Under the pieces are notes generated by a model. It did no database searches and had not been told where the DNA came from. It saw only the letters and a list, made by a program, of their open reading frames with translations. A stretch of 64,000 nt of DNA from Bugula neritina (lineage: Eukaryota; Animalia; Bryozoa). The translations under genes and the position numbers were made by a program. Below, in pieces: positions 18,398 through 40,717 of the stretch (within the stretch, counting starts at the first letter, position 1; every line of letters begins with the position of its first letter). Location: positions 11,180,463 to 11,244,462 of the forward strand of contig OZ037770.1 of the NCBI GenBank assembly GCA_964035545.1. Direction: 5' to 3'.

Positions 18398-21300
18398 TTA
18401 TAGAGAGTTTATAATGATAACATATTCAGGGTAGACTGCAGTATTATCATATGCTTCGTAATAGTTCAAATGTTGCCGTTTTGTCGCACACGACTCACCC
18501 TCTGATGGATGTGGTGGGTATGATGGGTGTGATGGGTATAGTGAGCCATACTGAAGCTTTTTGTTTCCCGTGTTTTGCTCATGGACATAAATTCCATGAT
18601 TCCAGCTGCTAAGTTGATCTGCTGAGCTCATACCAAATGATCCTAGTATGTCAATATTTCTTACTTTTTGAGCATCGGATGTAGCAAAAGAATTCAATTG
18701 GAAAAATGGATTTTGGAAAGCAACTGGAATATTTCGGAAAAGTTCATTTTGCATATCTTCCTGCATGCCGAACATGGGCAAGGGATATTCTTTTATTTGA
18801 TCATGTGGTGAGACAGGACCACCAGTCTGTCTTCTGTGTAGTTGTTCAGTAATTGCTCGAGCTCTCACGTAAACATCAGACAAATATCTATTCTGAAAAT
18901 GATTTGTCATCTGTGCAGCATCACTGGCACTCGAGTACAGAGAGATGCTTGGTTTTCTATGAACGAAGCCTACAAATATTTTAACAAATTGTTATTTCCT
19001 AGTAGACCCTTACTATTATAGCTGAACCATGTAAAACCATAAATTAGATAGACCACATGTTCTACATTAAGTATTCAAACACCAACAGCTTGTTTAGCAT
19101 TTTAAACAAAAAACTAATAAGCTGAAACTTTTATTGAATTCAAAAAGCAAAAAAGCCTAATCTGAAATCTTGAAACTTAAAAACTACAAGAATAAATCAA
19201 AGTAGTTGAAACAGTTTGGAATTTGAATAATCAGTTTATGTAATTCAATCAATTATGCAGGTATAAATTACTGTAACACTGTGTGGGAAAAAGTCATAGT
19301 AAATGGGCAACAGCCTTTTATAGAGAAGATAACTCTCTAATAACTAATGTTTTACAATACTTGTATATTCTAATGTAGAACACTCATAAAGCCACACACA
19401 AAGGCCAATTTACTATTTAATGGCTTTCACCTTGTCTATGTTCCTTTCTAAAATTCCCAGAAACAATTAAGGGGATGTCGTTTTCTGTTGTCTGAAACCA
19501 CAAATGAGACGTCTCTACTAATTTCCCTTGCCTCCTTTGCTGTTTAGAAACTGCTGTTTTATTTGCAGTGTATTTTCTGTAGTGGTCAGCATTTTGGATG
19601 CGATAAATTTCTATCTAGAAAAGGAATGCCAACTCCATAGAATTCTGTTCTATTATATAAAATATAATATGTGCGTGTATGGCAGCAGCTTAAGAGAGCA
19701 CTGGGCCATGTTTAAAATCCTTTACCTGAAATTGGTTGCCAATAGGCTGATTTCTCTGAGCAGACTTCTTGCGACTAAAATATGCATGTATTGCGCCATG
19801 TTTCCTCTAAAAGTGGAAAAGTTGCGGAACTATCATATTATATTGCCTATGTAAATATTTTTAATTTTAGATTTATTTTTGCACATATAGTAGACTAAGA
19901 ACCAAATAGCAATAGAAAATTCTCAAGTCTGCTATTACCAACATATTACCTCAGTTTGTTTAATGAACGCAGCATTTCACCACCATTTTGCTTAAAAGAC
20001 TCCAAAACTCGTTTATACTCTGCACTGCCTGGTTCCAGAAACACTTGCCGCGGTTCTGCTACAGGTTCCTCCCAGTTGGCTGGTAGACTGGGTGTAGCAG
20101 CTAAAGCAGTAAGCAATCATGTGAGTTAATATATAATATTAGATTTGTAGTGATGAGTTTACCCAGTGGCTCCGTAGTGTAATGGTAGCACACTTGCTTG
20201 CATACCAGGGGCCAATTACTTTTTAGGCTATTTCAGCTATTTGCCGAAATAGCTTTAAAAATTACTGGGATTCAAACCACAAACCTCTAGCTTGCAAGCA
20301 GGCGCACTAGCTAATTACGCTACAGGGCATCGAGATTTCAAACAACAAGTTTGTTAATAGAAGCTGCATGTCAGCTGTGTTCTCATAAGGAAAGAATAAA
20401 AAACTTCTGCCATAATATTGATTCCTTTAAAATGAGAAAAATTGTAAGACTTGATCATTATCATAATATAGTTTTTTGTAATAATGATTCTTACTGCTTA
20501 TAATTTAGCAACAAAATAAAGCAGATATAAATGCAGGTTATACTAATGGCAAAATACTCAAGTTCATATATAAAAGTATTGAAAAATACGAAATTAATTT
20601 TAGTCAGAGCACAATTTTATCTCCACTTATTATACAATATGCATACCACTGTCAAACAGATGTTTTTGTGTAATTTGTGCTAAAAGCAGCTATTGCTTAA
20701 CATGAAACATAGCTGATAATAATCACTAGAGTGAAACTGATCAATCTATATAGGAGATCAAATTCTTGTTTTACCGAGAGTGTGCAGAGTTGGAAATTCC
20801 GAAAATAATTCTGGCATCTCCATACCAATGAGCTTTCCAAGTTCACTTATTATTTGTCTGTATTCAGTAATCACATCCACCTTTTAATATAAAGCAGTAA
20901 TATGAGTATATATGAGCACTTCGCCACTTGCACTACCATTGGAAATTGTCTTCTTTATTATAGAAGAGCTAAAAACAATACTAATAAAACGAACTTATGT
21001 TTGAGACTTGGTCAACACAACAACTTCATATATATTAAAAGTACAAATGGTTACTATGCAAACTTACCTGATGACTTTGCTTAAGCTTTGCCTCCAATCT
21101 TAACCTCTCCAAATGAATTTTAGACAGAGCTCCATCAACCTTTTCTTCCAAAAATTTGCTCATTTGAGTTTGTCTAGCCTTTCTCTGTGCTATGACTTGA
21201 GTCTCTAACTTCTGGTACTCCAAGGTAATTGCTTGTAGCTAATAATTAATAATAGGCTAATATGTCATTTTAATGACTGTGACAAGATCTAAACTTTATT

Positions 21301-24300
21301 CTTTGGCAGACTAATAGATTTTGTAGTCTAACAAAACTTTGCAAATATGGAGGCATTGCATATTTTCTAGTGCAGGTCTTCATTGAAACCACTAATATTT
21401 GAGGTGCAAATATTTCCTGGAGATATTCAGCTTTAGGATTTATGGTATAGTAGAACCAAAGTAGCTTAATTAGTCAGAATGGCAACTAATCAAAGCAACT
21501 TTGCCTTATAAGCCTTTGATAAATTAAAGGAAATGCATGAGTACAAATTTTCATAACCTATTTCAAGGAAAACTAAAAAGTGCAAAATTGGTTGTTTGTT
21601 TTTTCAAGATACAAATGTTCTACATTGATTGATTGAGTGGTTGATTAATTTAAGTGAATGTAAAAGTTGCTGTTTATATATAGAATTGTTAAGACTTTCA
21701 GTATATCATTTTAGTGATAACAATTAACAGATATAACATCTCACCTGCTCATCTCTAGTTGTGTGCAGAAGTTTAATGAATGTGTCTGTCTCTGTCTCAA
21801 ACACAGATATTGATTTACCAGCTTTTTTACTGAGAGAAGACAACTCTCCTTCTTTATTCAGTAGGTCAGAGGTCAACTTGTTGATGTCTTTCATCAACTC
21901 AGCAAATAACTCCTCTATGGAAAGGAGTTTGTGAGAAGCACCTAACAGTTATAAGCACACATTGACAGTTTTTAAGCTGAAGCTACTGTATTTAACATTT
22001 TATATGCTATATGTGCATTGTACTACGTTGAATCTGCTCTACTGTAAGTGTTTATCATTTGCCGATCTGGTGACCGTTGGTATATATTTTAATTTTAATT
22101 TTCATGATTTAAAAGAATTGACTGGATAGTCATCTAAATAATTGAACTAAAGACTATATGGAAATTATTTCACTATTTCACTTTACGGATTTATAATTGA
22201 AAGATGAGTTACATTTAATAAGAGAGTCGTTCACACCAATTATATACAAGTTGCTATTTTATGTAACTATGATCATACTATTGTATAGTAATAAATTGCT
22301 ATAGTAGACAGCATAGAGTAGCCAGTCATCTATTCTAATAGTACACAATCATAGTTTAAATTAATCAATCACCAGTTATGAAAAGGGGTTTTTATCGCTC
22401 ACCAAGATAAGTGTGAGCAATTCACCAATGTTGGTATATATAATAATTAACCATGCAATCACCGGTGTTGTTACATGATTATTATTTACTCACCAGTGCT
22501 GGTATGTAATTATTATCCACTCACCGGTGCTGGTACAGTTCTTCAAACCAGACAGACATTTCACACAACAGAGACTCAGACAATCTCTACATCCAACACT
22601 GTAGGGCTGATCTTCATGTTTATCACAGAGTCTAACCTTCATCTTGTTAGCTTTAGTTCTATATTCTTGTATCGTACAGGTTTGGTGATCATCATGCATC
22701 TCTCCGTGAAACTACAGCACAGATTAATTATATTTGATAAACAATTTTGTATCAAAACTAAGGTTATTGGGTATAGTTAAAACTCTTATGAGAGTTTAAG
22801 GGGTGTTAGCAGTTGAATACAGGTGCTGTCTGGCATAATTAATATTGACTGAGTTGACACATAACATCAGGTACTTGCAAAGCACGTTGCATGCTTCAAC
22901 TTATAACTGGATGGACTATATATATACATGAGCTGATATATATATATATATATATATATTTATATATATATATATATATATATATATATATATATATATA
23001 TATATATATATATATATATATATATATATATATATATATATACATTATATATATATATATAAATATATATATATACATATATATATATATATATATATAT
23101 ATATATATATATATATATTATAAATAGGTATACGAGAAACATTGTTATTTATTACTTTATTATGTAAAGTAATTACACTGATATTTCGGGTACCACTGTA
23201 CCCATCTTCAGAGTAGCAATGAATGAAATTCAAAAATTATTATGTTACGTTAGACGTTATGCATGACACAAAGAATAGAGAGTGACAGTTATTGTAAATT
23301 ATTGAAACTTAAAGGAGATAATCTTATTTTTTATATTACGCAGGTCAAAAATTATACTGATTTTTTTGCATAAAAATAAATTAGAGTTGACAAAAAAAAT
23401 AGATATCCAAATATAAAAACAGCAAGAATTAGTGAAACTATGTGAGAGTTGAGTATTGTGGAGCTATTGATATAGTTTTAGTGGTATGGAGTAATTTTGT
23501 TTATTAAGTTGCGGTTTTATTTGTTTAATGTAGAGAGCTTCGGCTACTTTTCGATGGTGGATTCCTTTAAATGAATGATTTAAAACTGTTATATTGTCTA
23601 TTGATATGTATATATATATATATATATATATATATATATATATATATATATATATATATATATATATATATATATATATATATATATATATATATATATA
23701 TATATATATATATATATATATATATGTGTTCAGTAAAATTACTTTTTCATGTAATTATATAGGTATAATATGTTAGAATATTACAAATAATAATAATAAT
23801 TTTATTATTTATAATTTTGCCTAATATATTACGCAAAATCATAAATAATAGAATTAAAGAAGCTTGAACCTAGAAATCAAATCACAACTGTATAACTGAA
23901 TCTTACTACAATTAAGAACTAAAAGATTTTTTTCTGGTAGTTTTTAAATTTGTAAAGTTAATCTACATACAGAAATGAGTCTGCCAAACCTGTTTGTGTT
24001 GGGAACAAAACTTTTTATCACATGAACCACAGTAGATAACAGCTGATACATTCTTGTTTTTCTTCATACAAACATCACATGGAGTGTTTGAACTGTTGCT
24101 CACTTTTGCACTTGGCACTCTATCTGGTACAGCATCAAACACTTGGCTGAAACATGGAAATATATGTAGAAACTATGTATAAATAGAGCTGGCTTGTTAT
24201 AAGTTGATTAAAGGTGTCTAGAGCTAGTATTTAGCAATTATCTTCCGGCAGTACTGCTCAAAAACACCTATGGCTGAGTTCAAGTCATATAGCTTGCTGC

Positions 24301-40600: not shown

Positions 40601-40717
40601 CGGACCACAGTGTACATGAGAACAGGGGAGTTGCTTAGGATCTACTAAATCATCATCTACTTGAAGGCAGAAGCCACATTCTCTCTTCATGCTTTTTCTA
40701 ATTGCAGCAGCTGCCAT
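34639..40717 (-). CDS. TRIM + PARP/ART-like domain protein, copy 3 (~553 aa)
   Basis: Coding exons 40717-40548, 39975-39819, 39390-39204, 38412-38216, 37170-37000, 36798-36690, 36152-35986, 35646-35460, 34955-34639; all GT-AG and in phase. Confidence 0.85.

Follow-up and report, generated by a model that had tools for sequence, protein, structure and literature searches.

Ubiquitin ligases (E3 enzymes) of the TRIM type are classified by their C-terminal target-binding domain, which in TRIM5alpha is a SPRY domain with variable loops. In the pseudo-PARPs PARP13 (ZAP) and PARP9, a domain derived from an ADP-ribosyltransferase (ART) lacks the His residue that binds nicotinamide adenine dinucleotide (NAD) and works, if it works at all, non-enzymatically. 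Both of these proteins have E3 partners, TRIM25 for ZAP and DTX3L for PARP9. Here we describe a gene family of the bryozoan Bugula neritina in which a TRIM-type E3 half and a PARP-like domain are encoded together. The family was analysed in a 64,000-bp window (C6:11180463-11244462) of an AT-rich genome of 216 Mb, where three colinear sets of open exons on the minus strand, at 18.4-40.8 kb of the window, define genes A, B and C. Each joins the RING, B-boxes and coiled coil (RBCC) of a TRIM protein to three PARP-like exons. We consider it probable that these genes represent a lineage-specific TRIM subfamily with a captured, catalytically dead PARP14/15-type domain that serves as its target-binding module. 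The fusion itself, the PARP14/15-type origin, the predicted catalytic death, the conservation and the tandem expansion are well supported; that the protein binds targets as an E3, possibly in defence, can reasonably be inferred. A PARP-derived C-terminus would add a class to the TRIM ligases and would show exon shuffling recycling an enzyme fold into a binding module.

Gene layout, exon structure and splicing

Gene A occupies positions 18398-24937 of the window, gene B 26898-32903 and gene C 34639-40717, all on the minus strand, and in each the exons run in the order RING, B-box1, B-box2, two coiled-coil exons, linker and three C-terminal PARP-like exons. Reading frames, the splice consensus and sequence shared among the copies served to set the exon borders, which were then compared with contigs of two public sequencing runs. 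A preliminary description, made from the sequence of the window, had placed three RBCC and PARP-like genes here, and the open frames, the splice sites and Pfam matches to RING and B-box2 agree with it. Its hand-assembled exon sets had the layout right but overlooked two small exons, E5b (106-109 nt) and E5c (51-54 nt). With these included, all splice borders are AG/GT except for one GC donor, in gene B.

Gene B comprises ten exons with a closed frame of 1695 nt, encoding 564 amino acids. Exon 1 (32734-32903) contains the start codon (32903-32901) and the C3HC4 RING, is about 90% identical to the RING exon of gene A and ends at a GT donor; exon 2 (32013-32169), between AG/GT flanks, encodes B-box1 with a visible Cys/His pattern; exon 3 (31416-31602) encodes B-box2; and exons 4 (30360-30556) and 5 (29698-29868) encode the two putative coiled-coil segments, exon 5 having the GC donor where genes A and C have GT. 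The linker exon 5b (29408-29513) is conserved in A, in C and in sister TRIM genes without the PARP part, and is followed by the 51-nt mini-exon 5c (29098-29148), the frame of which is open throughout. The PARP-like part consists of exon 6 (28429-28595), an N-terminal segment reading LPANWEEP...EPGSAEY with a phase-0 donor, exon 7 (27691-27874), a beta-alpha-beta-alpha segment reading IEIYRIQN ... LWFQT with a phase-1 donor, and exon 8 (26898-27202), which holds a remodelled donor-site region, a variable loop of 39 residues, the conserved last strands and the stop codon. A 31-bp tandem repeat (31210-31426) reaches into the region of the B-box2 exon at its 3′ end.

Gene C has the same ten exons in a closed frame of 1716 nt (571 amino acids). 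Its RING exon (40548-40717) was mapped from gene B and has an ATG and a GT donor. AG/GT flanks border the exons for B-box1 (39819-39975), B-box2 (39204-39390) and the two coiled-coil segments (38216-38412 and 37000-37170), as well as the 54-nt mini-exon 5c (36378-36431), which is open; exon 5b (36690-36798) has a 3-nt insertion relative to B and a GT donor. Motifs, hhalign and exon borders place the PARP-like exons 6 (35986-36152) and 7 (35460-35646, with LWFQT), and hhalign and the exon border place exon 8 (34639-34955), the C-terminal part with a 40-residue loop and the stop codon.

All three had been assembled as genes. The frames of B and C are closed; that of A is shifted by +2, and its E5c is degenerate. 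The gene A model comprises exons 1 (RING, 24768-24937), 2 (B-box1, 23990-24146), 3 (B-box2, 22525-22711), 4 and 5 (coiled coil, 21745-21941 and 21068-21238) and 5b (20775-20880, identified by conservation with B and C), downstream of which lies the degenerate E5c homologue; skipping E5c would preserve the frame. In exon 6 (19950-20100), which also has an 18-nt in-frame deletion, the five-copy DNA alignment reveals a 2-nt insertion 21 nt before the donor that is absent from the other four copies. Exons 7 (19431-19614, with LWFQT, placed by motifs, exon border and alignment) and 8 (18398-18969, placed by open frame and exon border, with a 124-residue loop and the stop codon) are consequently out of frame, although both are still open over 61 and 189 codons, respectively, and the model totals 1895 nt, two more than a multiple of 3. 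We looked at the locus for another donor or acceptor with which the frame could be regained and found none. This makes gene A a pseudogene of recent origin, a truncated variant or the product of an assembly error.

The TRIM half is recognizable by standard profiles. In Pfam searches with single exons, the RING exon of gene A matches zf-RING_2 at 3.4e-7 (30.8 bits, cut-off 27.3) and zf-C3HC4 at 3.6e-5, and this exon is conserved in genes B and C and in the further copy E described below. The B-box2 exon of gene A matches PF00643 at 1.8e-5 (25.3 bits, cut-off 24.1). For B-box1 there is a sub-threshold, ANCHR-like B-box match (0.003, gene A), and the Cys/His pattern is intact; the same searches with the exons of gene A gave no match beyond the RING, B-box1 and B-box2 exons. 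Exons 4-5 encode about 122 residues with a charged, heptad-like sequence pattern at the position expected for the coiled coil, and these exons match their counterpart in about 100 further TRIM genes of this genome.

Evidence on splicing came from X1, a public run labelled metagenomic RNA-Seq and 'symbiont metagenome', which we set beside a DNA run, X2. Contigs of X1 contain GT..AG joints (minus strand) at five predicted borders, namely E3>E4 (30553/31413), E4>E5 (29868/30360), E5>E5b (29512/29697), E5b>E5c (29148/29408) and E5c>E6 (28596/29105), none of which occurs in X2. These joints indicate that spliced transcripts of a family member run from B-box2 through the two coiled-coil exons and the linker into the first PARP-like exon. 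X1 covers introns too. Two other joints were not used: 27110/27690, which starts at the predicted E7 donor and lands inside E8, is ambiguous and of low depth, and 31590/32766 likewise had non-canonical ends, short sides or low depth. Within the introns, the segments 28701-29100 and 31701-31900 reach summed contig depths of tens of thousands in both runs, as high-copy interspersed repeats.

The three genes are whole-gene segmental duplicates, with identities of about 75% in introns and 85-93% in exons, and the proposed tandem family extends beyond the window, with two further copies upstream, E (full) and D (truncated). Copy E (C6:11094875-11102198, plus strand, 80 kb away) has the same exon order, open frames and intact splice sites, and a contig of a Joint Genome Institute metagenome (L015) carries its orthologue at about 90% DNA identity, with exons 7 and 8 open. 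Copy D (C6:11161845-11163835; L001:6681-8836) consists of the three PARP-like exons only, which are open and read LWFPT for LWFQT; there are no RBCC exons upstream of it, and GST-like and mitochondrial sequences follow. An ATP6-like mitochondrial sequence lies beside copy D (L008:7809-8378). The family is thus small, with four full copies, the frameshifted gene A among them, and one truncated copy, and it appears to be confined to one invertebrate lineage.

Origin of the PARP-like exons

Derivation of exons 6-8 from a PARP follows from a specific genome-wide profile, from exon-wise profile alignment and from shared intron positions and phases. Searched across the genome, the exon-7 profile retrieved the five family copies, and its next five matches (E = 2e-6 to 0.055) were all exons of macro-PARP-type genes. 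Four of these five lie within about 1 kb upstream of a PF00644-scoring exon of the same gene, and the fifth belongs to a gene interrupted by a retroelement. Macro and WWE exons lie upstream in two of the donor-type genes and macro exons in a third (the genes on C2 and C4 are among them), and compared with solved structures the donor-type catalytic exons match PARP15, PARP14 and PARP10 at about 1e-27 and ZAP far more weakly. The macro-PARP gene that best matches exon 7 is followed, about 3.5 kb past its stop codon, by a RING-finger exon (L010:5036-5377; C2:17055036-17055377), which places an E3 gene beside a PARP14-like gene.

Aligned exon by exon in hhalign with four or five canonical macro-PARP genes of the same genome, the TRIM-linked copies gave E = 3.3e-9 for exon 6 (LPxxW...EPGSAEY against LPxxW...TSEY), 6.5e-14 for exon 7 (I-x-R-I-Q-N...VETSxLWFQT against IKRVQN...VETTxLWHGT) and 3.8e-6 for the end of exon 8, where the C-terminal 31 columns align with the canonical IFVVFHDAAAYPEYIIKF. 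Both introns within the domain are common to the TRIM-linked copies and the canonical genes in position and phase: the first, of phase 0, lies directly before the I-x-R-[IV]-Q-N strand, and the second, of phase 1, eight codons before the position of the triad Tyr. Every copy shows the PARP-like motifs in the order first described. Of this motif series, three blocks (exon 6, exon 7 and the end of exon 8) are supported by hhalign, but SISLY...YVRARAI corresponds in position only. A search of 1.84 billion proteins with exon 7 returned a canonical PARP fragment with LWHGT (P0003, E = 9e-4) and a 49-residue fragment resembling copy E (P0002); a third hit, P0001, is an EGF-repeat protein and was rejected as spurious. 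The search yielded no full-length relative. A metagenome scan with the exon-7 alignment gave no confirmed match. Derivation of the C-terminal exons from a PARP14/15-type catalytic domain is, on these sequence comparisons, well supported.

The genome contains many TRIM genes, with at least 135 B-box2 exons and at least 99 coiled-coil exons that match the A/B/C family, in long tandem arrays, and among them the PARP-like end is limited to this one cluster. Such arrays lie at 9.1-9.2, 10.3-10.5 and 11.43-11.59 Mb of C6, at 30.8 Mb of C3, at 5.4-5.8 and 10.1-10.35 Mb of C8 and at 16.4 Mb of C5 (genome G000). Near C6:11.055 and 11.086 Mb, this cluster also contains two sister TRIM genes that have the RBCC exons and E5b in common with the family but continue differently and have no PARP exons, which places the point of acquisition downstream of E5b. 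We suggest that an ancestral TRIM gene gained the three catalytic exons of a PARP14/15-type macro-PARP gene by exon shuffling, and that the macro and WWE domains of the donor gene would not have been acquired with them.

Active site, variable loop and constraint

To our knowledge, the His-Gly pair that holds NAD+ is present in every active PARP. In the six copies aligned with canonical exons, the His-Gly of LWHGT is replaced by Phe-Gln, or by Phe-Pro in copy D. The NAD-binding triad, H-Y-E or H-Y-[ILVTY], is accordingly broken at its His, which is Phe; the position of the triad Tyr is taken by Ser or, with a one-residue shift of the alignment, by Val/Ile, in a stretch without significant PARP similarity. 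In a MAFFT alignment, Asp or Ala stands opposite the second stacking Tyr; the third triad position is Tyr. With its NAD-contacting His-Gly lost and its Tyr region too remodelled to be recognized, the domain is predicted to be inactive, like those of PARP13 (ZAP) and PARP9, and should neither bind NAD+ productively nor transfer ADP-ribose. After capture, the domain would have changed LWHGT to LWFQT and rewritten the donor-site tyrosine segment. The opposite view, that the protein is still an ADP-ribosyltransferase with an unorthodox active site, modifying targets or ubiquitin together with the RING, could point to a Tyr that follows the aligned Tyr position by 2-3 residues (SLY), to the Tyr at the third triad position (YYEAY) and to the fact that some PARPs work with variant triads. 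Set against the Phe-Gln or Phe-Pro pair, the Asp or Ala at the second stacking position and the lack of any detectable PARP signal in that stretch, it seems to us very unlikely.

Instead of binding substrates generically, a dead domain could act as a reader or partner, either of active macro-PARPs, as PARP9 does with DTX3L, or of ADP-ribosylated proteins, so that the ligase would control macro-PARP signalling in a cross-talk of ubiquitin and ADP-ribose. The domain stems from PARP14/15-type genes that are themselves multi-copy in the genome, and its conserved surfaces are outer strands (LPxxW, RIQN and YPEYxI) rather than the pocket, both of which suit this proposal. All recognizable residues that contact NAD or ADP-ribose are gone, however, and the gene contains no macro or WWE reader domain, and we consider such a role rather unlikely.

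A loop before the YYEAYDN strand has 124 residues in A, 39 in B and 40 in C and cannot be aligned between them. Its position, just before the third triad residue, is that of the acceptor loop of canonical PARPs. In the reading we favour, the protein would dimerize through its coiled coil and act as an E3 through its RING, its dead ART fold would bind targets where other TRIM proteins have SPRY or NHL, and this loop, equivalent in position to the ADP-ribosylating turn-turn (ARTT) loop and completely different between paralogues, would form the surface that determines specificity. As a paralogue-specific loop at the acceptor position, it is a concrete candidate determinant. The role of such a protein would probably lie in innate defence or in the control of macro-PARP signalling. 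A more specific form of the defence role is an 'integrated decoy' restriction factor, a single-chain equivalent of TRIM25-ZAP or DTX3L-PARP9, in which the dead PARP14-like domain with its rapidly changing loop baits viral or parasite factors that otherwise bind or antagonize macro-PARPs of the host and the RBCC ubiquitinates the catch; we put this forward tentatively, as one doubtful option.

Pairwise Nei-Gojobori ratios of nonsynonymous to synonymous substitution (dN/dS), calculated per exon without joining exons, are 0.24-0.34 in the RBCC exons, 0.25-0.41 in exons 6-7 and 0.29-0.65 in the alignable part of exon 8. Frames of 100-189 codons are open in this genome with its GC content of about 30%, and motif blocks are invariant across copies with dS of up to 0.3-0.9. 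Since dN/dS is 0.25-0.65 with the PARP-like exons included, the dead domain has been conserved as a protein, an argument for continued function. Exons 2-4 (B-box1, B-box2 and the first coiled coil; dS 0.05-0.17) are 3-10 times less divergent at synonymous sites than exons 1 and 5-8 (0.3-0.9), and this much lower dS suggests that gene conversion has affected exons 2-4.

Several observations weigh against a TRIM subfamily with a captured PARP domain, and they concern the identity of the domain and the integrity of the genes. As to identity, PF00644 scores no family exon at E ≤ 1 when exons are searched singly, and a six-frame PF00644 scan of the whole genome gives nothing on contig C6 at E ≤ 10; the HMMER check against this family that the preliminary description had proposed thus ended, exon-wise and genome-wide, without a match to family exons, and scoring exon by exon in this way handicaps detection. 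Profile searches of PDB sequences with exons 6, 7 and 8 were blank or returned one spurious match. The N-terminal half of exon 8 (SISLY...YVRARAIT) aligns with the canonical GxGxYFA...RVITG block at a non-significant hhalign E = 0.41, and 'SISLY for GIYFA' is kept as a positional guess only. AlphaFold models of single exons were poor (predicted local distance difference test score 43 for exon 8 and 67 for exon 7), and neither Foldseek nor VIA-align gave a meaningful match for the single-exon models of exons 7 and 8; the exon 7 model folds as strand-helix-strand-helix, in the expected order. The failed PF00644, PDB and structure searches would favour the notion that the resemblance to PARPs is due to chance and the C-terminus an unrelated, novel domain. 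This we regard as extremely improbable in view of three independent exon-wise profile matches that are colinear with the domain, a genome-wide profile that is specific and two intron positions and phases that are identical.

As to integrity, one of the three genes in the window, A, is frameshifted and looks broken. The RNA-seq check of a single-chain fusion succeeded for the joints from E3 through E6 but not beyond: E6>E7 and E7>E8 were not seen cleanly in X1 contigs, and E6>E7>E8 is not directly seen. The RNA status of X1 is itself presumed, and its contigs, 90-95% alike to gene B, possibly come from a paralogue or a related host. A decaying family, in which the PARP-like exons are functionless relics and the members pseudogenes or sources of RBCC-only products, would fit the missing joints into exons 7-8, the +2 frameshift and degenerate E5c of gene A, the reduction of copy D to three PARP-like exons and the failure of Pfam to recognize the domain. 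It does not fit the dN/dS in exons 6-8, the open frames and intact splice sites in B, C and E, the open exons of the orthologous contig, or the invariance of motif blocks among copies so divergent at synonymous sites, and we judge decay to be improbable. A single chain of RBCC and degenerate PARP domain, as first proposed, stands on the closed frames of B and C, the hhalign matches and the X1 joints into the first PARP-like exon.

Genomic surroundings and relation to described systems

Other features lie on either side of the cluster. Positions 1-8000 of the window contain mitochondrial-type open frames (ND1-, ND5-, ND4-, CYTB- and ND2-like) in a nuclear context, which makes this segment a long nuclear mitochondrial insertion, and 10394-11738 is a GC-rich island, with 51% GC in surroundings of about 30%, that holds open frames of gag-like or retroelement type; an element resembling it interrupts a macro-PARP gene (L012:706-2482). 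On the other side, 49300-60300 holds three tandem gene copies that combine a PAN/Apple-like Cys-rich exon with F-type (fuco)lectin-like exons (recognized by eye from a ...RPWWRVDLG... motif) and may be another expanded recognition family adjoining the TRIM cluster. Two near-identical intronless frames of about 325 codons on the minus strand (43978-44955 and 61698-62672) have the appearance of seven-transmembrane receptors.

Full-text literature searches, with partial coverage of the literature, found no description of an RBCC-PARP architecture. No fusion of a B-box or TRIM to a PARP appears in the PARP survey of Citarelli et al. 2010 (PMC2964712), and Marin 2012 (PMC3503706), surveying TRIM proteins, mentions no PARP domain. 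Perina et al. 2014 (PMC4245714) mention RING in passing among domains that co-occur with the poly(ADP-ribose)-binding zinc finger (PBZ) motif, and neither B-box nor TRIM. A single-chain precedent is DDB0232928 of Dictyostelium, which has a U-box, a macro domain and a PARP domain in one polypeptide (Citarelli et al. 2010, PMC2964712). Like the family described here, it joins an E3-type, RING-like domain to a clade-3 PARP; in contrast, it has a U-box and not an RBCC, retains the macro domain, lacks B-boxes and a coiled coil and belongs to another eukaryotic supergroup, so that the two are clearly independent fusions.

Compared with the catalytic domains of PARP14, PARP15 and PARP10 (mono-ART, H-Y-I/L triad, PF00644), the family keeps the motif order LPxxW, RIQN...Y..Y, LW-x-x-T and YPEY-x-I, but has Phe-Gln for His-Gly, an unrecognizable GxGxYFA...Y block and a loop of 39-124 residues before the last strands. 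It also differs from the macro-PARPs PARP9, PARP14 and PARP15, which have at least one macro domain N-terminal to the catalytic domain: none of the copies has a macro or WWE exon in the interval from the RING exon to exon 6. With ZAP-L (PARP13) and PARP9 it shares an ART-derived domain without the NAD-binding His; those proteins begin with zinc fingers or macro domains, here replaced by the RBCC, and their E3 is a separate polypeptide, whereas here E3 and pseudo-PARP form one chain. One polypeptide that unites a RING E3 with a pseudo-PARP, which are separate antiviral partners in vertebrates, would be a natural experiment on the cooperation of these modules. The order of RING, B-box1, B-box2 and coiled coil is that of TRIM proteins with SPRY, NHL or filamin domains, and tandem, lineage-specific expansion is common to both. 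As in TRIM5alpha-like proteins, the C-terminal domain carries a hypervariable loop; here that domain is derived from a PARP.

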